A DNA stretch of 61,743 nucleotides, filler included, from Platydemus manokwari (taxonomy: Eukaryota): the NCBI GenBank assembly GCA_037951405.1. It is 5 parts of 5 records of this genome, joined end to end, with 100 filler letters (N's around TTAATTAATTAA, not from the genome) between each part and the next. Parts side by side here need not be neighbours in the genome. Positions count along the whole stretch, not along the records: positions 42,273 to 61,743 come from JBBMOY011911385.1; 4 more parts are not named here. One strand, written 5' to 3'. The position numbers were made by a program, and so were the translations under genes. The notes beneath the pieces were generated by a model. The model saw only the letters and a list, made by a program, of their open reading frames with translations, was not told the DNA's origin and made no database searches. Below, in pieces: positions 42,273-61,743 of this stretch; position 1 is the first letter of the stretch, and each line of letters opens with the position of its first letter.

Positions 42273-43972
42273 ATTTGATATTTGTAAAATATTATGATGA
42301 GGATCGAACGATAAAATATGCAAAACCATATCCAGCACATTTATATAATCACGAAATAAAGTGATTTATTTTCGAAATGTTTCTTTTCCTCTTCTTCATT
42401 TACGACTTTTTAATGGATTTATATATTTTAAAATCATATTTTCATTCGTGATAAAATTTCGTTATAACTTGTATCGAAATACAAACATCATGTTGCCAGT
42501 ATTAAAAATGTACCAGTTTATGAATCTGTCAATGAAACTGTGAGAAGAGATCAATTCTGGACTTTATCAAACATTTTATAGACTGCAGTTCTTTCAATTT
42601 TTTTGAAAATTTGATGGGGATTTTCATTGGTTTAAAAAATTCAACGAGTAAATTGATTTTTATCTTTTTAAAAGCGTAACATTTGATTTAATATTCTTCA
42701 CATTCCATTTAATCAAACCAAAATAAAGTTACATACTCTTTAGTAAAGGAATTTCCAAATTATTTTAGGCCTAATACCGGTGAAATATTGATTGATACAA
42801 GATATATTTTGATTCGTGTATTTTTTATGAAATAATTGATTGATTTGTTCATCGTGTTTTATCCAACTGGGTTTAAATTGTAATTCGATATAGACTTACA
42901 CGCATACACACACGTATATATGCATGTATGTGTGTAATTTTGCAGGAAATTGTGATCGATATGATTTAAATATATCCATCAATGTTTGAGAATAGTTGAC
43001 ATAATTTGTTTTATTCTCTTTCTGGAATAGAAAGCTTGAAAAATTGATAACTCTCTGCTTTGAAGTAGTGCAATATTTTACTCGCTTAATTAATGATTAT
43101 CGAAGGATTAGTGAGGAGGCAATATTTTTCTGTGATACACGATTTTCAGTAAGAGAACTGAATTTGTAGAAGCCAGTTTTTGAAATCATTTTTAAAATTG
43201 CCTTCACTGTAAGCGATCTACATACAATACATTCGCTAATTGGATCATAATGAATAGCTCGATAATTAGGTCATCTCCAATTAAATAGATCCAGTTTAAT
43301 GCTAATCAATAATAATGAAATAAATTATCTCCAATAAAAACAAGTTAAAGAAATTAAAAATATTCATGATTATAAAATCTCTGTTAACCATACAAAATTT
43401 TACATGTCGGGTAGGTTATTTAAATGTGGGCATCCAAATATTTGTGGAATTATATATTTTTAAAATTTAAATATTTTTTTTTTATATTTCAAATTTCTAC
43501 TAGGTTTTCCAAACTTGTCAAGTTTCATTAAAAGATATAAAAGATGTATTTATATCATTTTTAATTTTTTATACCCACGTAATAAAAAATAAATTCGAAA
43601 AATACTTTTTTCTTTAGTGGATAAAAGATTTTGTTATTTTTTAAAATTTACTTGTTCTGACGTTCTGTTTTTTTTGTTAATTTCGTCATTTAAATGACAT
43701 TACGGTTTGAATCGATTTTTAAAATATTTGATGTTCTTTACCAATTGAAAGAGAAATAAAACAAGAAAGGCTGACGGTTTTTTATTACGGCCTCTACACA
43801 AACTAGCTAAAATCGCTCATTTGAATGCCGTTTATGAAAAATTCTATGATTCGTTTATACATTACGGATATACATAAAATTAGACATGGCTCTTTGTTAA
43901 ACACGCGAGAAACTGTTGACAATAATTGATTGCAAATACTTTATAATTAATCAATATATATATTTTATTTAG

Positions 43973-44276
43973 AGAGTTTGCTATTGGTTTCGAATTAGAG
44001 TCAGTGGATCAGTATAATACCAGCAATCCCAATAATTTCAAAAAGAAATTATCTGGGGATTATCGGTAATAGAATTATTGATTTTTATGCTTGGATAATT
44101 TCACGTTGATAATTTCATTTTCTCGATTCAGCCGAGGATTTGTTGTTTCAGAATTCAATAATATGTCAGGAGGTATTTATAATATCAGAGTTTCCACTTA
44201 TTCTCCCAACCAAGAAGGTCCATTCATATTGAAAATTGGATCGATCAGGGACCTCAGTCTTTACCAACTAACATAA
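43973..44276 (+). CDS. CAPN7: Calpain-7 (PalB-like), last two exons 43973-44065 and 44132-44276
   Basis: EFAIGFELESVDQYNTSNPNNFKKKLSGDYR|RGFVVSEFNNMSGGIYNIRVSTYSPNQEGPFILKIGSIRDLSLYQLT* matches the calpain-7 C-terminal domain (YSVGFE..SGDYRxGF..GIxNI.PSTF.P.QEGPF.L); 66-nt GT-AG intron keeps frame. Upstream exons not recognised in this contig. Confidence 0.88.
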
Positions 44277-45364
44277 ATCAAACGTTTATTTTATCATTCA
44301 AACTTTGAATAACGATAATAAAATGTCTTGTTATTATCTTCTATTATTTTCTGAAATATTTTGGATGTGGTATTAAAATTTCAAAGGATATCGATTTATT
44401 GAAAATGAGGTGAATTTATTGTATTAGATAGTAATTGGAATAACATTAGCGAGCGTTGTCGTAACATTATAAAAATGTTTTGTATTATGTCAAACTGATA
44501 TCCAAATGCATGAGGTTCGTGAGAGGTGAATATCATTTATTTATATTGGAAAGTTCTAAACGATATTATTCAAGCCACAAAGCATAAATACACAATAACT
44601 CGGAATTAATTTCATTCTTGTCATTACATTTCAGATACAATTATTCAACGTGAACGATATACAGATTTCAAAACTTGATAACCGATTACCGTTATTCAAA
44701 ATCACAAGCGGTTTTTTTAAATTGTGAATATTTTTTATTAATTCTTGAGCTTTTGAAATTCATTTTAAGGAATAAAATTTTTGTTGAGTTTAATAAGAAG
44801 AAAGATTTTTTATTATTCCAGATTATATTGTTAATGCATAATAAAATCTCTATCTATAAACGCTACTTAATTTCTGAGACAATTTAGATTTTTTATGAGA
44901 TTTATTATATCACATCGTTAACCCAGGATATCTTAATTAATAAATGGATTGAAAGAAATATTATCGACAAATTATTCTAGATAAATATCAATTACTTATC
45001 GACAAAACAATAAACCTAATCGTTAATATTAATGCGAAATATGCTATTAGATATACAATCCATAAGGGTTTAAACATACATCAATAATAAGTATTATATA
45101 GACACAACAAATAAAATACGATAAGATACATAATATATAAGATTATGAAATCAATAAAATGTGGGCGTAAAAATTTTTTGAATAACATTTTAAAATCAGA
45201 AATTATTAATTCGAGGGAAACCCGTTGTGATGATTTCATAAAAACCATAGATTTTAAAAATAAAATTCATATCACCGTGGCAACATGGTAAATTATCACA
45301 ACGAAAGTAAAATATCACAAAAATGAATCATCACGCCCACAAAATTCAATTATATATAAACCAG

Positions 45365-45900
45365 CATCACAAATCAGTGATTGCACAAAATGTTCTCGCT
45401 ACAAATCGCATACGTTCACATAAGCACATAGAATTATAAGATCATAGAATTATTTTCCGATATTTCAGACGGGATTTGCAATCCAACAAGCATTCGCAAG
45501 CAGAATCATTCCGTCATTATTTCGTACTTGCATTCAATAAATTTATTCAATTCAATTCACACTTCAATTTTATACCGAAACATGGCAACCATTATTATTA
45601 TCATTGTTAGACTATTTGCATCAATCTCTGACAGGAGACGTGTTGTGAAATAATAACTACGTTGATCCTTCAAATTCTATTAGAATTTGCTGGGACAATT
45701 AAATCAAAGCTCCAATTCTTGTTTCATATCACAGAAGAATGTCATTAGTTATATCCAGGGATTATTGGTCTCTTCAGGATACATTATCCCATCTGTCGAT
45801 TTTAAAGCATTTCACATTTGTTTATCATTATTATGTTCAATAAAGACTTTTATATCAGTTGTCTTATTTTGATCATAGTAGTTTGCAACTTATTAAAACT
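45365..45900 (-). pseudogene. Heavily decayed frame, possibly a piggyBac transposase 3' remnant
   Basis: Minus-strand frame with scattered stops (..FIEHNNDKQM*NALKSTDGIMYPEETNNPWI*LMTFFCDM..) followed by a Cys-rich end (CLCER/AICSE/REH); loosely piggyBac-like, by eye only. Confidence 0.2.
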
Positions 45901-46108
45901 GTTAGATGACAGATCTTTGATGGAATCATTAACTATCTGTTCTAACTTATATCATTAACTTAAGGACTAAATGATCGATAAATTATTGTTGATTCATTCA
46001 TATACATGTCATGTCGCAAATTCCATAATTATAATAATTATCAAAATATATAACAATAAAGAGAAATTTCATGAAAAAATTTATTAATAAAATATGATAT
46101 CTAGTTAT

Positions 46109-49100
46109 TCAGTGTTTACTATCGATATAAAATTCAACAGAAATATTATCAGGTAATTCTGAAGGTAACTGGTTAATTTTTCTGTCTTTAGGCAATGGTT
46201 TTGGAATATTGGGAACTGGTATGTACTTCTTATTGACAGTGGTCGATTTTGTAAACTGCTTGCTTATTAAGTCATTGATTCTAGAAACAGTAATTCCATT
46301 AATTGGTTTTCCACTTTTCTTTATCATCTTGTTAGATTCGTATCCACCTCGACGATCTTCTTTTTGTTTTTTACACACTGAACCATTTCGTTGAGATTTC
46401 GATGTACTAACACTTGAAGTAGGACTTGATAACAGTAGCGACTCAGGAATTAACTGACGGGGAATTTCAAAACGATCGCAACGATAATTGGAAAATTTCG
46501 ATTCTAAAGCCTTCATCACAGCTATAAAATACGGTGGTGAAACCATCGCACCAATTAATTTACGCCCATCATGGAGTTCTATCCGGCTTATAAGACATTT
46601 TCTGATGACAGAACCTATTGATTTAAAAGCAGAAAAAACAGCCCCAGTTATAAGATAACTTGTTTTTGTTCGTTGACCGTAAGAACAAAATCGTTTCGGA
46701 CAGTTTTCATTGCAAATATTATGCAGGCAACGTAATCTACTCTCGTCATATACATACTCCCAATCTTTTTTAATATCACATGCTTCACTTTTTTCCCACA
46801 TTGATTCGAAAGATTCTTTGCTTATAGTCTTTTCCGGAAAATTCGGAGTAATTAATACCAACTCATTCGACGACTTGTAAATTGCCAGTGCCAAAAACAG
46901 ATTTTCAAAATTTTTCGATACGCAAAAGAGATTATTGTTCGTGTCAGCAGAATATATTTTAAATGCTTTTTCCCACGACACTCCATCTTCGACATTAATG
47001 ATCTTATGAATCTTGATTATTTCTTCATCGTTTGTGGAAGCTTCATTGAAAATAACCGTTTCTTCTACATATACAGTATCTTGTTCATTGACAACATCTC
47101 TGATTCCATAATCGAATTCGTTTCGAGCTTTGGCTTTCTGTGATTCATTTTCTATTATGTCAAGAAAATATTGGAATAAAGCATTCTGCATATCAATATC
47201 AATCCCAAGGATTCTATTCAAAAATTTCGTTACGGTCATATGTTTAGTTTCGTGCAAACCAACATTCTTTAAGGTTTGCTGAGCGATACTACGAAAAGTT
47301 ACGTTATTATTTCCATATAAATGTAGATACCCAGTAGGAAATGGAACAGTAGGAGACTCGCTCCTATTAATAGACTGAATCAAATGATAAATAGCTTTTA
47401 ATCCTAATTCGTTATCAAAGTTAAATTGAGCAAAGTCTTTATTGTTCGCACATCTTCTATCACCATGGGTTAAGGCTCCCAAACACTCTAAACGTTTGGC
47501 AATTGTCGAAGCAAATCTTCGTTCACCTGCTAAATCCGATATGAGAAATACGTAATGAGGAGAAATGACTTGATTAGAACGATGAGTACGTCCAAATTGT
47601 TGAACTGCTTTATCTGCAGACCATGGTAATTCAAGGGTAATATGAAATCTTTGACGATTGTTTTTAAACCTCTTATCAGAGTGAAGAGAAATGCCTGTAC
47701 TAGCAGCATCGGATATAATAGCAATAGGCTTTTCACCATTATTGAATCTGTCTTTTTCCATTAAATTTATTTGATCAATAGCGACATCAGCTTCTTTTCT
47801 TGGTTGATATGAAATACAACCTTTATTTTCCAATATTCTGCCTTTACGACCCGTCATTTCTGCAACCATGTTTGGGCCTCCTAATTCATGAATCAGTTGA
47901 TCCAATGCATTAAAAGGAAACATGCTGTCAATATCCTCAATTGTTTTTAACATGTTTTGCTTAATCTGATTATCTAAAGACGAATTTTCATTTTTGATTC
48001 TCACAGATTGAGGAATGTATGCACTATTATCTTCATTGATAAATATAACATCATCGTCTACATCATTCTCAGTTATGTATGACATCACTGACTCCCTAGT
48101 ATTACTCTTGTTAAAACTTTCGAAATATTCTTCTAATTCTGTGTCGCTTTCAGTTTTCTGTTTCTGATCTCTTAATTTCTGATTTTTTCTTAATTTCGAT
48201 TTTTCTCTATTTTTTACAAGATTTTGAACACTCGGATAATGGTTTTCTATGAGATTTTTAATAACTCCTTTTGCGCTTGAAACAAAATCAAATATATCCC
48301 TCGTGGATTCTTCTAATATGTCCAAAGTTTGTGCTTCACCAGTCGACTGTAGACCAATCACAACACATTTATCTCCCTCCTTAATTTTTGATTGAACAAT
48401 TTTCACGCACTGTTGAATTTTGCCTGCAATGCATAGGTATTTAAAAAATCTCTGATGCGCTGACCAAAATTGAGCTTCGAAAATATTTTCATCTTTTTCG
48501 GTAGACTTATTTCTTTCAAAAGCCTCTTTGAAGCATTTATATATTGAATTCCACACCTCGACACATTTGTTGTAAACATCTTTAAATTTATGACCGTTTA
48601 TAGATGAATTAGAGATTGGTAAGTTTAGAATTTCAAACTCAACACCTTGAAAACTGAGTTGCCGAGCTAAATAAATCCCTTTAGTTTTCATTTCTATAGC
48701 AATAAGTTCCATCGCTCCGACACCTAACGATGTCAACGTGCTCTCAAAATCCTCAAATTCCGAAAATCTCTTACCAGGCCCCCACAATCCCAATCTCACC
48801 ATATATGCCATATGTTTCGGCTCCGATGCTCCAGTAGCACTGGCATACACCACACGGGCAAATCTCAGTCGTTCTTGCAACTTTTTCACAATAGCACCAG
48901 TTTTGGTTTTGTTGTTTTGATGCAGATTTTTCGCTTTATGACATTCATCAAATACAATCACTCCATCATAATCTTCTCCAAACCAATCAATTATTTGATC
49001 CAATCGTTTTTTAAATATATAACCATCTTCTTTCTTACTTTTACTAATTAATGATGAATAAGAAACAAATAAAACCCCTTCATTAAAATGACCATTTTCA

Positions 49101-50011
49101 TTGCTATCGATCTGATTGTAGGTCATTTTATTCAAAGCTGCTACTTTAATGTGAGTTTTAATCGGTTTGCCAATATCGCCCAAATCCCGTTCAGCATCTT
49201 GTTTCAAATCACTCGACACCGATATCCAGATGGATTTCTTTCGACCATGTAAATGATTCTCTAAAATAATGCCTCCAATTGTTCGACCTTTACCAACACC
49301 AGCTCCATCGCCGATGAGAAATCCCAATCGTTTATCGTCGTAAAAATCTTCATCGTGCTTTTGACACGCATAAACAACGGCTTCAAGTTGAACATTGGAC
49401 AGAATTCCTTTGTCGATGATCTTTTTTGGTAGTTTCAATTTATACGTTATATCTGGAACTTCGGCACTTACCAAAGATCTTGATTCAACTACCATGTATG
49501 GATGTGGTTTACCGATTTTTAGTTTGGCTGGTTCATAATTCCTGTATGCCTCATTATGTATCAATTCAGCAAATTCTCTATTTTCAAAACCATAATCTCT
49601 ACTAGAAGTTTGCTTAAAAAAGCTTGACGGTTTATGTTGCTGGAATTTATTGATCGATGGTATATTGAATTCGGTTTTCATTTTTTTAGAATTTAAATGT
49701 TTCCTTCTTATTAAATCAGTCGATTGCCTTTTTCTAGATGGTATCGTAGTCATGATTTCAATAATTTGTTGATCTACAGCAACTGCTTTTGCACTAATAT
49801 CAGGATTTTTTTCCAAAATTTTATTTAAATCCATTATAGATAAATAAACATTGGAAACATTAATATTCGTTACTGATGTTGGCGTAGGAATATCATTTAA
49901 GCCATCCATTGATAAATAACCGTTGGAAATATTTTGATCCAAAACTGACATTGTCGGAGTAGTATCGTTGACATCAGATTTTATTGTCGTGAGATCATCA
50001 AATAAATCCAT
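46109..50011 (-). CDS. SBNO: Strawberry notch homologue, paralog A (1300 aa, single exon)
   Basis: Uninterrupted ORF, ATG at 50011. SBNO family motifs: HPxxVVES, QLEAVVYACQKH, Walker A GFLIGDGAGVGKGRT, Walker B FDECHKAKN, YASATGASEP, QFWSAHQRFFKYLCIA, VIGLQSTGEA, VAEMTGRKGR, GISLHSD, ITLELPWSADKAVQQFGRTHRSNQ, FLNRILG. Confidence 0.97.
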   Translation of the reverse strand: MDLFDDLTTIKSDVNDTTPTMSVLDQNISNGYLSMDGLNDIPTPTSVTNINVSNVYLSIMDLNKILEKNPDISAKAVAVDQQIIEIMTTIPSRKRQSTDLIRRKHLNSKKMKTEFNIPSINKFQQHKPSSFFKQTSSRDYGFENREFAELIHNEAYRNYEPAKLKIGKPHPYMVVESRSLVSAEVPDITYKLKLPKKIIDKGILSNVQLEAVVYACQKHDEDFYDDKRLGFLIGDGAGVGKGRTIGGIILENHLHGRKKSIWISVSSDLKQDAERDLGDIGKPIKTHIKVAALNKMTYNQIDSNENGHFNEGVLFVSYSSLISKSKKEDGYIFKKRLDQIIDWFGEDYDGVIVFDECHKAKNLHQNNKTKTGAIVKKLQERLRFARVVYASATGASEPKHMAYMVRLGLWGPGKRFSEFEDFESTLTSLGVGAMELIAIEMKTKGIYLARQLSFQGVEFEILNLPISNSSINGHKFKDVYNKCVEVWNSIYKCFKEAFERNKSTEKDENIFEAQFWSAHQRFFKYLCIAGKIQQCVKIVQSKIKEGDKCVVIGLQSTGEAQTLDILEESTRDIFDFVSSAKGVIKNLIENHYPSVQNLVKNREKSKLRKNQKLRDQKQKTESDTELEEYFESFNKSNTRESVMSYITENDVDDDVIFINEDNSAYIPQSVRIKNENSSLDNQIKQNMLKTIEDIDSMFPFNALDQLIHELGGPNMVAEMTGRKGRILENKGCISYQPRKEADVAIDQINLMEKDRFNNGEKPIAIISDAASTGISLHSDKRFKNNRQRFHITLELPWSADKAVQQFGRTHRSNQVISPHYVFLISDLAGERRFASTIAKRLECLGALTHGDRRCANNKDFAQFNFDNELGLKAIYHLIQSINRSESPTVPFPTGYLHLYGNNNVTFRSIAQQTLKNVGLHETKHMTVTKFLNRILGIDIDMQNALFQYFLDIIENESQKAKARNEFDYGIRDVVNEQDTVYVEETVIFNEASTNDEEIIKIHKIINVEDGVSWEKAFKIYSADTNNNLFCVSKNFENLFLALAIYKSSNELVLITPNFPEKTISKESFESMWEKSEACDIKKDWEYVYDESRLRCLHNICNENCPKRFCSYGQRTKTSYLITGAVFSAFKSIGSVIRKCLISRIELHDGRKLIGAMVSPPYFIAVMKALESKFSNYRCDRFEIPRQLIPESLLLSSPTSSVSTSKSQRNGSVCKKQKEDRRGGYESNKMIKKSGKPINGITVSRINDLISKQFTKSTTVNKKYIPVPNIPKPLPKDRKINQLPSELPDNISVEFYIDSKH

Positions 50012-51676
50012 AATTAATTTTCATAAATATTGTTACTAAAACGAATTATTTATTTTTAATTAAAAATATCCAAAACATAACCCGTTAAAAATATTAAAAA
50101 TTAATTAATTTTTTATAAGGTTTTATATATTATTTTTTAAAAATTTGTAATTTAATTTTTTAACGTTTGTTTTTTAAAATTAATTGAATATATTAATATT
50201 AGTACCATATTATAAATTGAAAAATATTTTTATAATTATTCACTGATATTTTTTATTATTTTTTAATCAAATTTTATAAAATAAAACAATTTCACAAATA
50301 TTTTTGCTAGTATGGTATCATAAGTATTATCAAATCAATTAGAATCTTATTTCCAATATATCAATATTTCAATTCAACTCTTTTATCAAGATTCTATCAT
50401 GATTCTTCATGATTTTGTGATTAATTTTAGTATCATATAATTAAATTTTATTGAAACTAAAGATTTTTAATATAAGGATCTATCATTTCGTAAATTAATG
50501 TCGATTAAGTTGGCTCAATTTCTCAACATTTTTTATCTGTTCTCTCACAAAAACATTTAAGTTTAAAAGTTATTACTACTGATTTACATTGAAAATTGAT
50601 CACTACTAATTTAATTAAATACGTAATTTTAATTAATGAAAAATGAAAATGCTTCTAATTTCCACGTTAAAATTAATTAAATTATATTACTGATTTTCAA
50701 AAGTATAATTTTTTCATCAAATTTTTTATATTATAAAGATATTTTCAAATATTAACTTTAAACTTTTTATTTTAAATTTTATTTAAAATGAATTTCAATT
50801 TTTTAATTTGACTTGTTTTCAGTTATAATTTCTATTATATGATTTAATTTTATTTGTTTTACTTTATTGTGGTTCAGTGAATTCTATTTAAAGTGTAAAA
50901 TAAATTTTATTTTAATTTCGCGATTCATTTGTATTTGTGTAGGTGTGGAAGATTTTTAATTTATTTTCAGTAAATGGTAAATTTAAAAAAAATCGCTTAA
51001 TAGTTTTCAAAATATAATTTCATTAATGTTGCAATTTATATTTTTAAAGTGCATAAATCTTCATTAATTAGTTTACGTCTTATATTAAATAATTAATTAA
51101 TTAGAGTGTGTAATATATTCTCATTCAAGATATCTATTTTATATCTATCCATATGAAAATCTTGTAACTGTTGTAGGGATTCAAATTTACTGTTAAATGT
51201 TTTCTCATAATTAGAGTTGAATGAAATGATGTCGGGCTTTTAATTATCATTAACTCCGACGAATAAAAGGTCATTTATCGGGAAATTATATTACTTATGT
51301 TTTCTGTTCGCACTTCTGTGAATTTTTTTTACAAAAATCATATCTTTTGTAATATATGTGCTTTCATCACAACGTTTTTCTAAGCAAAAATATTAAAATG
51401 TTGTGAAATGGTAAATTTTTCTTGAACAGTTTTTATCGTGTTCAATGTGCGGTATTATATAATGTTTTCGTCTTGCTTCAAAAATCCATTTTGAGGTCAG
51501 AAGCATTGCATTCTACGAAATATATTAATGGAATTTTATTTGTGCCCAACTTGATAATAGCAAAGAACAAATCAACAATAATTTATTGATAAATTATTCC
51601 TTAAATTAATATGAAAAGTTCATATTTTATGATTCAAACAAAGATCTGATATGATACGTGTCACAATATTAACGGG

Positions 51677-51698
51677 ATAATAATAATAATAATAATAA
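51677..51698. repeat. (ATA)n microsatellite
   Basis: ATAATAATAATAATAATAATAA read directly. Confidence 0.8.
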
Positions 51699-54514
51699 CA
51701 AAATTACAATAATAATATTTATAAAATATAATAAGAATTAACTAAAGCATAGTGTTGAAGTTAGGTACAGTAGATGTAGTGCCCTGAATATGGGTAGCAA
51801 TGGCTGGGGAGACTGATGGTAATCTACCTCTAAATAGAAGGTAATTTTAAAATCCCAACAAATTCAGTAGAGCTTTGAATGAGGTTCATAAGTAATAATT
51901 CATTACTAATCCATATCGGAGATTGATGTGAATAGAATAATACGAGATATAAAAATTGAATTTACCATATTGAGCATATAATGCGATTGAAATTGATCAA
52001 TAATGTTTATCTTGCGAATAGACACTTGATTAATGTACTATTTTCCTGCTCGCGAAGTGTTGTTTACGAATATGAAAATTTCTGAGTCAGCTAACGTTGT
52101 ATATGAATCGAGAATTATTTGTGCGCATTTCTGTTAAACTGGGTTGTTTATATAATGTTTACATTCTCGCCAGAATGACTAATTTTCCATATTTTTAATC
52201 TGTATTATGGTAGAGCCGTCAGAGCTAGTGATTTATTTTTTGTTTCAAAAATTAATTATCAAACCAGAATTAAAATTTCATCTGATTCGATAAAATCCAT
52301 TAAAAAATTTTTTACGATGGTCAATTTTAAAATCGTATTGTTATTTTCTTGTTTCTAGTACTTTATGTAGTGGAATTCTATTTCATGATTCTAATAGATT
52401 TAAATCAACAAGATATTCCCGATGATTCGAACCGCTAATAATTTATAAGTAGTCAGTAGCTGAAAATTAATATTTTCAACAATGGACAATATAAAACTTT
52501 TATTGATTATAATAATAATTAACAAACAAAGCAATACCGCGACCCCGAGAATGGAAAATCGACATAGGGTACTACATGGCGCCATACTTTGATGTAAAAA
52601 CTAAAGAAGTACGTGATTTTTAACACCAACAAATTATAATATGACCTTGGAGAGAATACCATTAATATTTCTGAACTAATCTCCTGTAGAGGATTAATGA
52701 GAATAAACTGATAATAATATTATTAATAGTTACCATTGTAGTAAAATTTTAATTAATATAGATTCCAATATGAATGGATTTAGATGTTAGCTGAATAATG
52801 GATAACCTGGCCTAAATTGAAACAGATTCTAACTGAGTTACAATCAAAATTAATACTAATATATTCCAAATGCGTGAATTAAAATTGAGGGAATCCGAGT
52901 GACGTCAATTGTGATGAGAAATTTTGTGCAAATGAATTTTGATTGCTTCTACTCTTATACTGTTTCAGTTTGTGGGTGTTTACAGGACTTATTACTCATT
53001 TTACATTTTCTATAGCAATTCTCTAAGTTGCCGTAGTAATTTCAGATTTAAATTCGGATTACTATGCTTACATCTACCATTTCCATGACAACACATATTA
53101 ATCATGGTTACTAATTTATTTTCCCGAAACTTTAAAAACAATGTATTTTATATTTACCAATTTTTTTTAATGATTACTTAAAATTATATGTATTTTATTT
53201 ATGATTATAATATAATGTAATTGTGTATATTATACGATACCTATATGTATATCCAACCAATGTGTAATGACAACCTCAAGTAAAAGTGGCATAAAATTAT
53301 CATCAAGGAAGTTGATTGACTACTCATAGCTACAGGACATCTTCTAGAAATAGTTTTAACAACAGCGTCTCGTTACATTTGACGCTTGCATTCTTCTGCA
53401 AAAAATAACAATCGAAGAAATACATGTTATTGTACGACTGATCTATCGCACATATAATCACTGTTGTATTTTCAACAAACCTTAGTTTATTCCATTTTAT
53501 TGATTTATATCGCAACCAATAATTTAAAAGGAATAAGTTTACTGTTGATGCAATCCAACATCGCAATAAATAGAACTCGTGACTAACAACAGATGTAAAC
53601 CCCCATCATAATATTGATTTCACTTATATTATTAATAAATTCCATTGATGAAGAATAAACCTTTCAATAATAATTAATGAAAGAAAGTAAATTCCAACAT
53701 AATTAGAATAAATGAAATATGAACGAGATTTTTAAGCGTTTATCAAAAATTCACTTATTTTTATTCTGAAGTATCTTTTCATGTGACCAGATAGGCCAGC
53801 AGTGTGGTCCAAAATATTATAGGATGAAATAATTATTTTAAGCAACCGTTAGAGAGTTAAGTTTATAAAATACAATTTCGGTTTTTCATATGTTAGCATA
53901 AATAAAAGTACTGGTACTTCAGAACAGGCATCACAATAATTATTGCATCAACATTACTTAACGGTAAAATCTGGCATATTACAGCATTTCATTGGGTTAA
54001 AAAATTATTATTTATCTGTGATGAATTGCATTTGACTATGTGATCAATAACTTTAGATTAAGCCGAATTACAATTATCCGTCAATAATAAATATTATTAT
54101 TTCTGATTTCTAAAGATGATAAATATTTAAAGATATTTTTTCATTATAATTAATATAAAATTATAAATCATATAAAAATCACCGTACTTGATAACTGCCT
54201 ACACGTAGTCAAGAGTAGTCAGGGAGTGTCTAATAAAACATTTTTATTGTAATATCACTACTAAATTTGTTTTTATGATATACCTTGAAATTATTATTAA
54301 TTTTGTTTCTCATTCCAATTTATATATTCAACCACGATATTCGATTATGTTGATTCAATAATAGGACTCGTCGATTAATATATGTTATTCAAAAAAAAGC
54401 TCGACCATCCATCGATATGATTCAAAAGGAAATCTTTGAAGAGCGAGTCCCAAATTAAAAGAAAATAATTTATTCATCGAAAAATTTCCCATAAAAAGAT
54501 AAAAATATTATACA

Positions 54515-57500
54515 TTATAAATCTTCTTCCGATATAAAATTGACAATCAAATTCGGAAATTGATAACCCTTATAATTTTGATTGTTAGCCTCTATTTTTC
54601 TTTCTGTTTTGGTAATATTTTTTTTATCATTCGTCCCTTTCACATCTTTTGATGCAATGATTTGGTTTGATTTATTCGTTGATTTCGTTAATTGAGCTCT
54701 AACAATATCATTGATTCTCGAATAATCCAATTGAACTGAATTCACGATTTTCTTCGATTTTTTCTTTGAACCCGAGCTTGGTTCAGATTTGATTTTACCA
54801 GATGATTCCAACTCCTCCGTTGGCAATTCTTCCTTCGATTCTGGCATTTGTTCCATTGGAATGTGTTGTATGGTTGGAACACTATAACCCATCTCTAAAG
54901 CATTCATCACAACTTTATGATATGGTCCCGGTACCAGTGCTCCAATCAGTTTCGTTTTGTCAAATAATTGCACTCGAATTATTTCCAATTTCCTATTAAT
55001 ATGTGCTTTGTCAATCTTTTTCAATGCCAACAATACAGCTCCAGTAATGAGATAATTTATCTTCGTCCTTTTCCCATCCGTACAATTTCTGTGAGCACAT
55101 TTCGTTTTGAATATCTGATGAATACATTTGGTTTTGCTTTCTCCATAAATGAACTGCCAATCATTTTGAATCATTTTCGGTTCCGTTTTGTCCCACACCG
55201 TTTTTAACAAAACTCCATCGATTTCCTTTGTCGGATAATTTGGTCTCATCAGTGAATAAAACCCATTATCATTATATTCAGCAAAAGCCAATAATTGAAT
55301 CTTATTATCTTTCGTTGATTTCGATGTGTAGAAATGATTGGTTCTCGTATTGATCTGATATCGATCCATAACTGATTCCCACGAACTACCGGTAGTGTTT
55401 TCGATTTTATTCACCACTATATCATCATTATCATATCTGGAATCCGTTTTGAATGTATGTGATTCCATCACATAAACATTATCATGATCATTCATTAAAT
55501 CTCTGATGCCATGATCAAACTCATTACGACATTTTGCTTTTTGCGATTCGTATTCGATAATATCGAGAAAATATTGAAACAACGCATTTTGCATATCTAG
55601 TGCCATACCAAGAATTCTATTCAAGAATTTCGTCACGCTTAAAAATTTAATTTTATTCAATCCAACACTGGCCAATGCATCTTGAGCACATTGTCTGAAT
55701 GTTTGGATATCATTGTGATATAATTTCATATATTGTTCCGGGAAAGGAACAACACCAGTTTCTTTATTAATTAATGAATTAATCAAATTGTGAAGTGCTT
55801 TCAAACCAATCTCATTATCTAAATTAAACTGGCTCAAATTCCGTGAATTATCACACCTTCTATCACCATGGGTTAAAGCTCCAAGTGATTCCAATCTCTT
55901 AGCAACCGTTGCTGCGAAACGTCGCTCACCAGCTAAATCGGATATCAGAAACACATAATGCGGACTGTTAACTTGATTCGAACGATGAGTACGACCGAAT
56001 TGTTGGATTGCTTTATCAGCTGACCATGGCAGTTCAAGAGTGATATGGAATCGTTTCCTTTTGTTTGCAAATCTTTTATCGGAATGCAACGATATACCAG
56101 TACTGGCAGCATCGGAAATTATCGAATAAAGCTTTTCTCCACTGTTAAATAAATCCTTTTCAATGATATTGGTTTGATCAACGCTATGATCTTCTAATTT
56201 TCTCTGTTGAAATGAAATGATTCCATTCTTTTCAACCATTCTACCCTTACGCCCAGTCATTTCAGCCACTTTATCAGGACCGCCCAACCCAAAAATCAAT
56301 TGATCTAAAGCATTCAATGGAAACATGCTGTCAATTTCTTCCACAGATTTCAACATTCTCTGTTCACCATCATCATCTATTGAAAATTTTCCATCATATC
56401 TCGGTGTTGAACTGTTACTATGGCAACCGTTTGTGGTTAAAATTGGAGAATTCGAATAATTGTCTTCACTATCAATATCACCATTGGAATCTTTAGATTT
56501 CATATGTTTCAAACTCCTTTTGGCTTTGTTTTTTTCCATATTTTTCACGCTCGGATAATGATTCTTGATGAGATTTTCCACGACACCTTTGGCTGTCGAT
56601 ACAAAATTATCACAACTCCCACTCGTCTCATCCAATGCATCCATGGTTCGTGCTTCACCGGTCGATTGCATGCCAATCACCACACAATTCCCATTGACAT
56701 TCACTTCATGTTTCGATATCCGAACACATTCTTCCACTTTACCAGCAATGCAGAGATATTTGAAGAATCGCTGATGCGCCGACCAAAACTGTGCCTCGAA
56801 ATTGGTTTCATCTTTCTCATCCAATCGATTCCGTTCGAATGCATCATTGAATTCCTTGTAGATATTATTCCACACTTCAACACATTTATTGTAGACATCT
56901 TTAAACCGATGACCATTGATGGTGGAATCTTCGATTTGGATTTGTTTGATTTCACAATGGACATTCTGAAAGCTCAATTGTCGTGCCAGATAAACGCCAT
57001 TCTTTTTCATTTCTATGGCAATCAATTCCATCGCTCCGACACCCAACGATGTCAGCGTGCTCTCAAAATCCTCAAATTCCGAAAATCTCTTCCCCGGTCC
57101 CCACAATCCCAATCTCACCATATATGCCATATGTTTCGGTTCCGATGCTCCAGTAGCACTGGCATACACCACACGGGCAAATCGCAATCGCTGTTGCAAC
57201 TTTTTCACGACGGCACCAGTTTTGGTTTTGTTGTTTTGATGCAGATTTTTCGCTTTATGGCATTCATCAAATACAATCACTCCATCATAATCCTCACCAA
57301 ACCAATCAATCATTTGATCCAATCGTTTCTTGAATCGATAAACACCACCACCACCACCACCGCTACCCCCATCACCACCCTCACCAGCATCTTTTTTGCT
57401 TTTACTTATCAATGATGAATAAGAAACAAATAAAACCCCTTCATTAAAATGACCATTTTCATTGCTATCGATCTGATTGTAGGTCATTTTATTCAAAGCT

Positions 57501-58654
57501 GCTACTTTAATGTGAGTTTTAATCGGTTTGCCAATATCGCCCAAATCCCGTTCAGCATCTTGTTTCAAATCACTCGACACCGATATCCAGATGGATTTCT
57601 TTCGACCATGCAAATGATTCTCTAAAATAATGCCCGCAATCGTTCGACCTTTACCAACACCGGCTCCATCGCCGATGAGAAATCCCAATCGTTTGTCGTC
57701 GAAAAAATCCTCATCGTGTTTCTGGCACGCATAAACGACGGCTTCCAGTTGAACGTTGGACAGAATGCCTTTGTTGATGATGATCGATGGTAATTTGAGT
57801 TGATATGTGATATCGGGTGCATTGGTGCTGCTCAATGAACGTGATTCGACCACCGTGTACGGATGGGGTTTGCCTTTTTTGAATTTAACGGGCTCATAAT
57901 TGGAATAGGCTTCGCTGTGAGTGAATTCGGCAAAATCCAGACCATCATGGTCGTAATCTTTCGGTAAATTAGATGGACTGTTATTTTGAGTGAAATCAAA
58001 TATGTCGAATTGATTTGTTGATTCGATTTTTGTTGGCTCATATGAATCGAATATGTCGATGGTGGTATTGTTATTTACTGGATTGGATTTTGATTCGGAT
58101 TTCGAAGAAGATGGAGAAATTTTGATTTTTTTCGAATCGGTGTTTGGATTGGTTTGTTGAAGAGATGAGTCGGGAAGTTTCTTTTTTGGGATCGATGTAT
58201 TTTTGATTGGTTTGACGAAGTTTGCTTCCGAAGAATTTGTATTAGACGGAGAAATGGTTTTAGGTTTAGTGGAAACGGTTGGCATAATAAATCCAAAATT
58301 GGAACTGTTTGATAAATGAACCGGAGTATGTGAAATGGCTACCAGAGGACTATCCATCGTTCTAGAAAGAGAAACAATACCAGATCTTATAATTGGTGTT
58401 GTACCGGATGTTGTATTATTTGCACTAAAACCGGACTGAAGATCTCGAGGAGTTTTCGGTTGGAAAGTACCATTTTTAAGACTTTGAGTGTTCTTCATCT
58501 CATTTATTTGTTGCGATAATGTTCCGAATTTTAGAATTTTGGCATTAGAATCATCAGATTTTTTTTCTGTTATGGGTCGTTTCAAAAGCGATCTGGACTT
58601 ATTTTGTTCATCTTTTTCTCCTTTAATTGTTGAGAAATTATTTAAAAAATCCAT
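54515..58654 (-). CDS. SBNO: Strawberry notch homologue, paralog B (1379 aa, single exon)
   Basis: Uninterrupted ORF. The track's first M (58657) is a TTG; the ATG is at 58654 (MDFLNNFSTIK, compare paralog A MDLFDDLTTIK). Same complete SBNO motif set as paralog A, with a longer S/T/P/N/K-rich N-terminus and a Gly-rich insertion. Confidence 0.97.
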   Translation of the reverse strand: MDFLNNFSTIKGEKDEQNKSRSLLKRPITEKKSDDSNAKILKFGTLSQQINEMKNTQSLKNGTFQPKTPRDLQSGFSANNTTSGTTPIIRSGIVSLSRTMDSPLVAISHTPVHLSNSSNFGFIMPTVSTKPKTISPSNTNSSEANFVKPIKNTSIPKKKLPDSSLQQTNPNTDSKKIKISPSSSKSESKSNPVNNNTTIDIFDSYEPTKIESTNQFDIFDFTQNNSPSNLPKDYDHDGLDFAEFTHSEAYSNYEPVKFKKGKPHPYTVVESRSLSSTNAPDITYQLKLPSIIINKGILSNVQLEAVVYACQKHDEDFFDDKRLGFLIGDGAGVGKGRTIAGIILENHLHGRKKSIWISVSSDLKQDAERDLGDIGKPIKTHIKVAALNKMTYNQIDSNENGHFNEGVLFVSYSSLISKSKKDAGEGGDGGSGGGGGGVYRFKKRLDQMIDWFGEDYDGVIVFDECHKAKNLHQNNKTKTGAVVKKLQQRLRFARVVYASATGASEPKHMAYMVRLGLWGPGKRFSEFEDFESTLTSLGVGAMELIAIEMKKNGVYLARQLSFQNVHCEIKQIQIEDSTINGHRFKDVYNKCVEVWNNIYKEFNDAFERNRLDEKDETNFEAQFWSAHQRFFKYLCIAGKVEECVRISKHEVNVNGNCVVIGMQSTGEARTMDALDETSGSCDNFVSTAKGVVENLIKNHYPSVKNMEKNKAKRSLKHMKSKDSNGDIDSEDNYSNSPILTTNGCHSNSSTPRYDGKFSIDDDGEQRMLKSVEEIDSMFPLNALDQLIFGLGGPDKVAEMTGRKGRMVEKNGIISFQQRKLEDHSVDQTNIIEKDLFNSGEKLYSIISDAASTGISLHSDKRFANKRKRFHITLELPWSADKAIQQFGRTHRSNQVNSPHYVFLISDLAGERRFAATVAKRLESLGALTHGDRRCDNSRNLSQFNLDNEIGLKALHNLINSLINKETGVVPFPEQYMKLYHNDIQTFRQCAQDALASVGLNKIKFLSVTKFLNRILGMALDMQNALFQYFLDIIEYESQKAKCRNEFDHGIRDLMNDHDNVYVMESHTFKTDSRYDNDDIVVNKIENTTGSSWESVMDRYQINTRTNHFYTSKSTKDNKIQLLAFAEYNDNGFYSLMRPNYPTKEIDGVLLKTVWDKTEPKMIQNDWQFIYGESKTKCIHQIFKTKCAHRNCTDGKRTKINYLITGAVLLALKKIDKAHINRKLEIIRVQLFDKTKLIGALVPGPYHKVVMNALEMGYSVPTIQHIPMEQMPESKEELPTEELESSGKIKSEPSSGSKKKSKKIVNSVQLDYSRINDIVRAQLTKSTNKSNQIIASKDVKGTNDKKNITKTERKIEANNQNYKGYQFPNLIVNFISEEDL
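57344..57390 (-). repeat. Coding (GGT)n-type trinucleotide repeat in SBNO paralog B
   Basis: (ACC)6 plus degenerate units on the + strand; encodes AGEGGDGGSGGGGGG. Confidence 0.9.
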
Positions 58655-61600
58655 CAATCTATGATGACAATGTGTATTTAAAAAAAATAATTTTATTTAT
58701 ATAATAACATCTTACTGTTAAAGAAATAAAATAAAATAGAACTAGTTAGAAAGTTGCTTTGTGAATTTTAATTAAATTTGATTAACTACACCGCTCTAAT
58801 GCATGTTAGTCAAGATTATTCAAACAAATTAAATAAATATATTAATATTATAACTTAATATACTAAATTCTTATTAAAATGTATTTAGCTTATTTGTTTA
58901 TTATATTTATTTCGATAAATATGATTCCTTCGATGAATTTGAAATGAGATTAAAAATAATCTATCATAATTATTGCATTACCTTTATTTAGAATTATGTT
59001 AGAGAAAAAGAAATATATTTTCAAAAATTGACTAGTCTTAAATAAATTTCAACATCCTAATATTTATTTAATCTGATTAGTATTTGTTTTGATAAAAATT
59101 ATAGTTATTATTAATACTTTGATGTAAATACAAACTTTAAAACCATAATGTAAACATAACATGTACCAATGTTACAAATGTAAAAATATCCTCCGCGACA
59201 CTTGTTATTATAACATCAGCAAACTCGAAACCGCCATTATATGCAGATTCTAGCAGCGTTGGGTGTAATTATTTTTATTATTGAGATATTTTGTTGACTT
59301 AATCAATGTTTTAATTTATTCTGTCAGCTATTTTGAGCTATTTTAAGTTTCTTTAGTCTAAGGTAAGTTAAAAAATGCTTTTATGTGATTTCTAAGACTT
59401 GTTTTACTTTGTTTATGACTCAAGTGGTTATGGAAAGGAAAATTAATTTTAGTAAGGAAATTGAGTACCATTTCATTCGATAGCTGCACAATAGGTATGC
59501 ATGAAAAAGAAAAAATAAAATGAATTTTACTATCATAAATTAACGACAGATGTTCAAATTTAACTGTGTTACTCAGAGGTGTCACTGTGTGATAGCCAAA
59601 TAATTTTGTTCTATCTTTGTTTATTTATGAAATCCATTTTTCACTTAATAATTCAATTTACTAAGCTGTAATATCGTATTTTTTGTGAATCATTATCTTT
59701 TAAAGTTTCGAAGTATTATTGTTATTATTTACAATATAATTTTTATCTCCTTTGTATGGGATCAATCAGAATATACCGAAATCATCTGAATTTGTTATTA
59801 AAAATTTTGATGAATGAAATATAATTACATAGTTGTAATATTTCATCAGATCTTGATGCAGTTTGCCACATTATCAAAGAAAAAAAATATAAATTTAATA
59901 AAAAAAATCCCACAAGAATCTTAATTATAGCCAACATCAAATTAAACCCAATGATTTTCATTCGTTTCTTGTAAATAAATTTATTTATTTTATCAAAAAT
60001 TCTCTTTCGAGAAAGTTATATTGGATTGTTTAAGCTGGGATTTTCAGAAAAAAATAATGTTGGCTATTTATTTGACGAATTCCTTTATCTAAATATAAGA
60101 TCTGATCTGTATAGCCATGAAAAGTTTATGTTAAAAAGAATGAAAGATATTTATGAACCTGAAGTACAATAATAATGTCAAATGTGTAAAATTCATAATA
60201 TAACAACAATTTACATTCGAACGTGGTCAATATCACCTAGTTTAATGTCAGTATCGGTATGATTCATTATCTATGAAATATTATTTATTATCATCCTTTA
60301 TTACCATCTTGTTTAATATGATATTCATTTTAATAGAATTGATTATTTTCAAATTAATTGATTTTATTTATTTCTGATTTCTCAATTTAATGAAATTGCT
60401 TTAACTAAATCTACGTTTTTATAAATTGGCTAGACGGTTATTACACTGTTTTTCAATAATTTGAAGTTAAATATGGTCAAAGTCTTTTTATTGAGTTTAT
60501 GTGAATAGAGAAAGACGTGTAGTTTCGAAAACTCTCTTCAGTTCGATGATTGATATGGACGGATTTTTTTAAGGAATCACAAAATACAAATTTTATATTA
60601 AAGAAAAGTATGTCGATTTCCTAATAAAATTGTGAATTCCGTAATTTTTCGAGGTTTTTGAGTAAAAGTTGAATAAAGTAATATTAAAGGAAGTGCTCTA
60701 ACGGGGAGAAAGTGAGATTCATAAATTTACAATTTTCAATTGACTAATATCAGAATTTGATTAAATCATTTATATTACAATTTTTTCTGGTTTTTAATTT
60801 ATTCATATTTTACCAAAATAACCCTTATACTGTTTTATTGGACTTTGAATTCTATATATTTATGTTCTAGTTATTATTCATGTGCGAATCCAATATTGAT
60901 TAATTGGAACAATAGTGCTAAGTGTGAAGCAAAACTAAAACATGATATTTAAGGAAAACATTCCAAAAGTTCGATCCATAGAGACTAGATGAGCACACGT
61001 TCCAATAGCTAATCAGATGTCTTCAATGTCACGAAAGTTAGAAGACAACCTACTAACAAACTGGTATGTGGACTGTTTCATATGAACAGACACACCAGGT
61101 CTGTAAAAGAAGTCGAATCTGGAAAGTAAGTACCAATATTTCTTGGTCGGTAATTTTTGTTCAACTTACTGTTTTGCCTGATTATTTTAATGATAAATCA
61201 TTTATGGTCGTTGTTTATTTCAGGTGGCAATCCCGTTCCTAACTGATTTTAACTTTGTTCTTGAGAATGATTTAAAGTGCAAATATTGACAAATTAATTT
61301 TAAATGGCAACTTTGTGATTATAATTAGATTTTTGAATATTTCGAGTCAGTGAAAATCTTGCAATAGGATAAACTTTAAGTGCACTTGTTTATAATTAGA
61401 GTTTCTATTTACTTTTACTTAACAATTTCATTGGTCAATATGCATTCTTGTTTTAAATAAAAATAAGTATATGTAGTGTAGCTTTTGACTAATTTTATTT
61501 GACAGGTTTTAATAAATTGTATGCAGACTTTTTGGAATTAGAGGAGAATAGTGAAGCTTATAATGCAGCAGTATCCTCACAAATAATATGATGATTTGCA

Positions 61601-61743
61601 ACGGTTACCTCTGATAATGAAGAATTATATGTGTAAGAATAAAAAATTTAATTAATAATAATGGTAAAATCTGATATTTTTTAAGGTGGTGTCAAATTTG
61701 GTTGGTTGTCTTCCTTTGGTAATCCTGTTTGATTACCGTTTAA

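Follow-up and report, generated by a model that had tools for sequence, protein, structure and literature searches.

A layered patch of probable gene conversion between two old Strawberry-notch paralogs of Platydemus manokwari

Results

Two uninterrupted Strawberry-notch genes at one locus

The window analyzed here is a stretch of 61,743 nucleotides of Platydemus manokwari DNA (GenBank assembly GCA_037951405.1), made of five parts joined end to end with filler between them. This report concerns its last part, positions 42273-61743 (record JBBMOY011911385.1), which has 19,471 nt, contains no N and is 29.6% G+C. The list of open reading frames (ORFs) for this piece holds two long uninterrupted minus-strand ORFs, A and B, which lie 8.4 kb apart in the same orientation. 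Both are assigned to the Strawberry-notch (SBNO) proteins by their Pfam matches and catalytic motifs, and our subject is a patch of about 660 nt in their first ATPase lobe within which the two genes resemble each other at silent sites as well.

46109-50011, minus strand: SBNO paralog A, an uninterrupted ORF of 1300 amino acids (ATG at 50011, stop at 46109-46111)
54515-58654, minus strand: SBNO paralog B, an uninterrupted ORF of 1379 amino acids from the first ATG at 58654 (the mechanical ORF list begins one codon earlier, at TTG 58657)

The N-terminal P-loop lobe, AAA_34, gives a nearly full-length profile match in both proteins (residues 169-472 of A, E 2e-122; B, E 4e-119). The second lobe, Helicase_C_4, is matched over profile positions 1-271 of 271 (residues 701-972 of A, E 1e-101; B, E 6e-97). 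The SBNO alpha/beta domain (PF25373, cut-off 24 bits) is above threshold in B at 34.4 bits and below it in A at 20.7 bits. A motif search finds Walker A (GAGVGKGR), DECH, SAT (as SATG) and motif VI (QQFGRTHR) intact in both copies; in A they begin at residues 236, 355, 391 and 804, respectively. The closest public proteins are metazoan and of the SBNO1 type, at only 40-55% identity, and in a tree the A+B pair groups on a very long stem outside every bilaterian SBNO sampled.

Neither ORF is interrupted by an intron over its 3.9 kb (A) or 4.1 kb (B); an origin of the pair from a retrogene was considered and is not claimed. Outside the patch the two proteins are 51% identical. Both genes appear to be under purifying selection, with dN/dS of 0.06-0.11 in the shoulders of the patch and 0.29 in the C-terminal region, the ratio being given only where it is measurable. 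The first-pass annotation of this DNA had likened the genes to families under conflict or subfunctionalization, a comparison that finds no support in these values (0.06-0.29 where measurable).

A patch of silent-site identity in the first ATPase lobe

In the assembly, positions 49050-49249 match 57411-57610 at all 200 bases, as the first-pass annotation had stated, with the caveat to the word "perfect" that a read contig carries T at 49138 (see below). Its hand-counted 94% for 48707-49009 against 57026-57328 was close to the measured 94.4%, and a repeat search returns 96% for 49022-49321 against 57383-57682. The second-lobe stretch 47460-47700, compared with 55863-56103, is 75% identical, with identities of 0.84, 0.95 and 0.46 at codon positions 1, 2 and 3; the divergence at third positions proposed for this lobe is thus confirmed. 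In the codon alignment, silent-site identity stays high from ~49400 down to ~48690, which agrees with the limit near 49400 suggested earlier.

A likelihood fit with two change points places third-position identity at 0.88 inside the patch and 0.41 outside. The fit gains 179 in 2dlnL (twice the difference in log-likelihood), compared with a maximum of 20.6 in 60 permutations.

48686-49348, minus strand: candidate conversion patch in A, maximum-likelihood limits from the change-point fit
57005-57709, minus strand: candidate conversion patch in B, from the same fit and the codon alignment; 42 nt longer through an insertion
49283-49306, minus strand: Walker A (GAGVGKGR) of A, within the 5' shoulder of the patch, by motif search and alignment
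48938-48949, minus strand: motif II (DECH) of A, within the 3' shoulder, by motif search

Outside the patch the proportion of synonymous differences, pS, is 0.76, which is saturated, and the duplication that gave A and B must for this reason be old. Conserved degenerate residues there use identical codons in a fraction of 0.47, against 0.46 expected for independent draws from each gene's own usage. Within the patch, 181 of the 205 same-residue degenerate codons are identical (0.88) where its own codon usage predicts 0.50 (binomial P 2e-31), and Fisher's test for identical codons in the patch compared with Helicase_C_4 gives 9e-18. The patch is an internal segment of raised identity, with diverged paralogous sequence on both sides. 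In gene orientation its edges in A differ in character: the 5' edge is fuzzy (49333-49447) and the 3' edge is sharp (48683-48710).

The patch covers residues ~222-442 of A (loosely from 195) and takes in Walker A, DECH and SAT, all inside AAA_34. The first-pass annotation had called the conversion domain-restricted. That description holds insofar as the patch lies within the first lobe and contains these motifs; it fails in that the borders of AAA_34 are not followed. Just outside the patch, at A residues 150-195 and 435-465, the outgroup majority frequency is 0.76-0.91, as in the patch, and A and B differ at 20-40% of residues. Since these ends of AAA_34 are outside the patch and equally conserved in the outgroups, the patch is not domain-shaped. 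Nor was the catalytic core homogenized, as had been proposed: because the second catalytic lobe is untouched, the core cannot have been homogenized as a whole, and even within the patch a 16-codon island stands at background divergence.

At 49274-49276, residue 246 of A, three after Walker A, is Gly, where B and each of the 33 outgroups carry Ala. By this comparison, Gly246 is a derived change in A at an otherwise invariant site within the patch.

Layers within the patch

The divergence inside the patch is graded, and its parts are listed here.

49050-49249, minus strand: identical core in A, the youngest layer, 200/200 with 57411-57610
57411-57610, minus strand: identical core in B, 200/200 with 49050-49249
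49004-49049 (end 49049/51), minus strand: diverged island in A, about 16 codons beside the indel, between the core and the 3' shoulder
57341-57382, minus strand: 14-codon (42-nt) Gly-rich insertion, mostly GGT, in the ATPase lobe of B; absent from A in the codon alignment

In the 66 codons of the core, 0 of 41 synonymous sites have changed (dS 0, 95% upper bound ~0.07). In the shoulders dS is 0.46 at 49252-49430 and 0.30 at 48700-49003, and outside the patch silent sites are saturated, so that dS is far from uniform along the genes; the earlier proposal had named uniform dS as grounds for its own refutation. Given the number of differing codons in the patch, an identical run of 66 codons has P 5e-6 (5 per million shuffles). 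The core is therefore a younger event and not a lucky stretch.

The island has a pS of 0.75, the background level, and only 7 of its 13 same-residue codons are identical, compared with 0.83 in the shoulders (P 0.016). The young tract ends ~30 nt short of B's 42-nt insertion, which is overlapped by a Tandem Repeats Finder array at 57346-57391. Either conversion was blocked by the 42-nt heterology, or the island is a fast-changing repeat.

Conservation of the protein does not account for the patch

The patch and the second lobe were compared with 33 diverse outgroup SBNOs. Identity to these outgroups is the same for both (~0.60 for the patch and ~0.56 for Helicase_C_4), while the A-B identities are 0.95 and 0.72, and A is separated from B by maximum-likelihood distances of 0.05 and 0.77. 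Protein constraint as the cause of the patch was rejected, as the second lobe is equally conserved in the outgroups and A and B are far less alike in it. The first-pass annotation had reached the same view from silent sites, and the outgroup comparison sustains it.

Read-level evidence

Reads for the locus come from one public run, kept only as de Bruijn contigs, which contains 96% of the sampled words of 46000-51999; no RNA run containing the locus was found. Run contigs spanning 46003-48766 and 49304-50319 show 0 differences from the assembly and tie the outer shoulders of A to sequence unique to A. Further A-type contig pieces cover 48790-48973 and 48944-49079, and one contig consists of exactly the 200-nt core, 49050-49249. 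At 16 positions the run offers an alternative letter, and 15 of the 16, on both sides of the core, are the letters of B at the homologous sites. B-type letters flank the core in this way, and therefore in the read graph an A-type and a B-type branch enter one shared core, in agreement with the assembly. The reads support a nearly identical core, short of proving 200/200.

Composition and neighboring features

The G+C content of third codon positions (GC3) in the 5' half of B (0.40-0.52, 56600-58015) is well above that of A (0.17-0.32, 48250-49650), and the 3' halves are similar; A and B are evolving under different compositional regimes. A 303-aa ORF at 56504-57415 on the plus strand runs antisense to B in exact codon register. 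Over 325 codons B lacks TTA, CTA and TCA, which together account for 3.9% of its codons overall. The antisense ORF is probably a by-product of B's choice of codons ending in G or C in that half.

Beyond the two genes, no ORF in the flanks reaches 100 aa, and a scan of flanking ORFs and stop-to-stop segments gave no above-threshold Pfam match. The flanks of A and B have nothing in common except a short A/T-rich element (50176-50263 and 58825-58908), which stands at the same offset, ~165-252 nt, upstream of both start codons. Its local alignment scores 59, compared with 48 for the best of 100 shuffles, and it may, on this slight margin, be a retained promoter-proximal element. Around A is an inverted pair of ~85 nt (45910-45994 and 51570-51648), located ~115 nt past the stop and 1.55 kb upstream of the start. 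The pair scores 78, compared with 38 for the best shuffle, and could be the termini of a mobile element or a small dispersed repeat present twice. A stop-free segment at 44130-44237 (plus strand) aligns with the final 36 positions of the Pfam Calpain_III profile at a sub-threshold E of 0.02. This hints at an intron-split calpain-like neighbor gene, unlike the intronless SBNO pair.

Discussion

Interlocus gene conversion as the best explanation

The silent-identical patch between saturated flanks, with its two ages of divergence, is best read as interlocus gene conversion between A and B in at least two events, and we regard this reading as very probable. It upholds the proposal of recent and repeated ectopic conversion, as the layering (run P 5e-6) is what repetition would leave. 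In an anciently duplicated, intronless and same-orientation pair, ~660 nt of the first ATPase lobe would have been overwritten by interlocus (non-allelic) conversion. A break in one copy would have been repaired with the neighboring paralog as template; a few hundred bases of the recipient, silent sites included, would have been replaced by those of the donor, and the flanks would have stayed unchanged. One or more older events would have spanned ~49348-48686, where dS now stands at 0.30-0.46, and a much younger event would have covered at least 49249-49050, where it is 0.

According to the experiments reviewed in PMC3924818, conversion acts mainly above 80% identity, has a minimal efficient processing segment of ~200 bp that must be identical without interruption, and leaves tracts with mean lengths from 50 bp to several hundred. 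Taken as a whole, A and B fall far short of this threshold, and only the patch can therefore now be a substrate. The location and persistence of the patch would then be mechanical: each event would restore the long identity that the next one needs, in the same place, and a region that had at some time dropped under the threshold would stay out, the second lobe among them despite its equal constraint. Such a self-reinforcing dependence on homology would explain the location without selection.

The direction of the older transfer can be approached through base composition. Of the 27 weak/strong differences found at third positions of the shoulders, 24 pair an A/T base in A with a G/C base in B. 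The codon-usage score of A's 3' shoulder is beyond all background windows of A and within the range of B, and B's GC3 exceeds A's, chiefly in the 5' half. These figures weakly suggest B as donor and A as recipient for the older layer, A having since decayed toward its own composition.

Alternatives to conversion

Several observations weigh against the conversion account, or bear on how far it can be pressed. The run may be the assembly's own source data. Its core contig reads T at 49138 (homologous to 57499), where both assembled copies have C; on the coding strand this C-to-T change turns GCT (Ala) into ACT (Thr), at a residue that is S, A or P in the outgroups, and the T may reflect an allele, an A/B difference concealed from view, or a mistake in the assembly. 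The run contigs also omit isolated variants (B's letters at 48821 and 48941 are unlisted), and sparse A/B differences in the core could thus be hidden. Depth over the core is 22.4 and not doubled. Contig depth in 46000-51999 tracks G+C (3.9 at a GC of 0.17, 8 at 0.24-0.26, with 7.9-14 at 0.26 itself, and 19-22 at 0.33-0.41), which indicates strong A/T drop-out in the library; as it follows G+C, depth is unsuited to a copy-number reading and was set aside as a copy-number test. The evidence on direction is compositional only: 11 amino-acid differences in the patch, polarized with the 33 outgroups, gave 1 A-like, 1 B-like and 9 ambiguous, and are uninformative. No relative above 55% identity came from a HMMER scan of 1.84 billion representatives, a word-based protein search or a metagenome scan, and protein A had no exact match; trees with sister species were for this reason out of reach. 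In the HMMER scan a highly identical fragment would have ranked if it had at least 300 aa, and anything shorter would not have covered both partitions of such trees. The same read data are what an assembly artefact would call upon. A short-read graph assembler may thread both copies through a shared node and pop the bubbles between them, and in this way create or exaggerate identity. At 19.5 kb the contig is short, and such an assembly may have produced it; the sole run has a word depth of ~8-23x and drops isolated B-type variants in the 3' shoulder, its T at 49138 disagrees with the assembled C, and the perfection of the core is without independent verification. Collapse, however, needs shared k-mers, and background divergence (third positions 41% identical, ~70-75% overall) leaves no common 31-mers; the copies must therefore be truly very similar in the patch. 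Moreover, the assembly keeps ~45 A/B differences there, the isolated ones at 48821 and 48941 included, and on either side of the core the A-type and the B-type version both reappear in the read contigs. An artefact could at most turn 200/200 into a few differences per 200 and could not remove the patch, and we hold it to be very unlikely as the explanation.

The remaining alternatives accept the patch as real and differ over its cause. Reciprocal exchange would require two unequal crossovers, or one crossover producing a chimeric gene that was then re-duplicated. Unequal crossing-over can act on tandem direct repeats, and the sequence of a single haplotype cannot separate a double crossover from a conversion tract. 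The patch is, however, internal, with paralog-specific sequence on both flanks of each gene; at least two nested layers in 660 nt would need several closely spaced pairs of crossovers, and a patch of a few hundred bases has the usual size of a conversion tract (PMC3924818), all of which makes reciprocal exchange highly improbable. Even less credit, to the point of near dismissal, goes to nucleotide-level constraint without any exchange, whether its source were an antisense gene, an extreme preference for certain codons, or an RNA or regulatory element embedded in the sequence. The G+C of the patch is somewhat above that of the rest of A, and in B the codon-aligned antisense ORF (56504-57415) overlaps the 3' shoulder. 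Codon preference is countered by the patch's own usage, which predicts 0.50 identical codons where 0.88 are observed, and a discrete functional element would not be expected to extend over 660 nt, to grade off at one edge and to contain a diverged island. An RNA element was rejected, as no Rfam family was found in 42273-61743 and the predicted folding of the core is ordinary (z -1.38). An antisense gene was rejected because the 303-aa frame does not stay open in A and matches no Pfam family. Selection is the one alternative that would keep conversion as the means. Selection would then maintain the patch as an island of concerted evolution limited to the lobe from Walker A to motif III, perhaps through a shared partner or a mixed complex; this is unlikely, if less so than the alternatives above. 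The nested ages and the unhomogenized second lobe are compatible with repeated conversion over a long time in the service of such selection, a course of events that we likewise think improbable.

Significance

Interlocus conversion thus remains our reading of a patch that is real, statistically overwhelming and built of two or more age layers, and the pair adds a further case to a known, textbook process. A literature search returned no report of gene conversion in Strawberry-notch genes. The practical consequences are several. Trees or duplication dates built from the AAA_34 lobe would make the ancient A/B duplication look recent, and the patch needs masking in such work. The A/B pair indicates that conversion can persist in a small patch after the rest of the genes has drifted out of reach, and this persistence bears on models of how concerted evolution ends. 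Finally, the two identical 200-nt direct repeats, with 8.36 kb from one to the other, readily lend themselves to unequal crossing-over, which would delete or duplicate the interval and give a chimeric gene with the 5' part of B and the 3' part of A; copy number may vary in populations. What is known of SBNO function is unchanged by the patch.

Comparison with known systems

The Strawberry notch family includes Drosophila sno, the vertebrate SBNO1 and SBNO2, and C. elegans let-765, and animal SBNO genes have many exons. Like the members of this family, A and B have AAA_34 and Helicase_C_4 with intact motifs, and the SBNO alpha/beta domain scores above the cut-off in B and just below it in A; unlike the multi-exon animal genes, they are uninterrupted ORFs. 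Their duplication is independent of the split between vertebrate SBNO1 and SBNO2.

Interlocus conversion between nearby paralogs has been reviewed for Caenorhabditis (PMC3966223) and for yeast, rodents, and human disease genes such as CYP21A2 and vWF (PMC3924818). The A/B patch resembles these cases: over a few hundred bases, less than the whole gene, closely linked copies of like orientation are homogenized non-reciprocally, at silent and replacement sites alike. It resembles them also in the long identical segment that the process needs (~200 bp), which is the size of the A/B core. Unlike most reported converting pairs, A and B are far older, with saturated silent sites and an overall identity below ~80%, and the patch is their sole substrate.

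A close parallel for the island is found in the GOT1 paralogs of Tigriopus californicus, in which islands of divergence within converted regions are read as regions under selection for new function (PMC3728101). The two systems share a mosaic of converted and unconverted sequence, in our case with the island at 49004-49049 and the persisting 42-nt insertion of B. They differ in that the A/B island sits at an indel and a repeat of Gly codons. For this reason a mechanical block to conversion, or fast evolution of the repeat, is a simpler explanation of the A/B island than selection.

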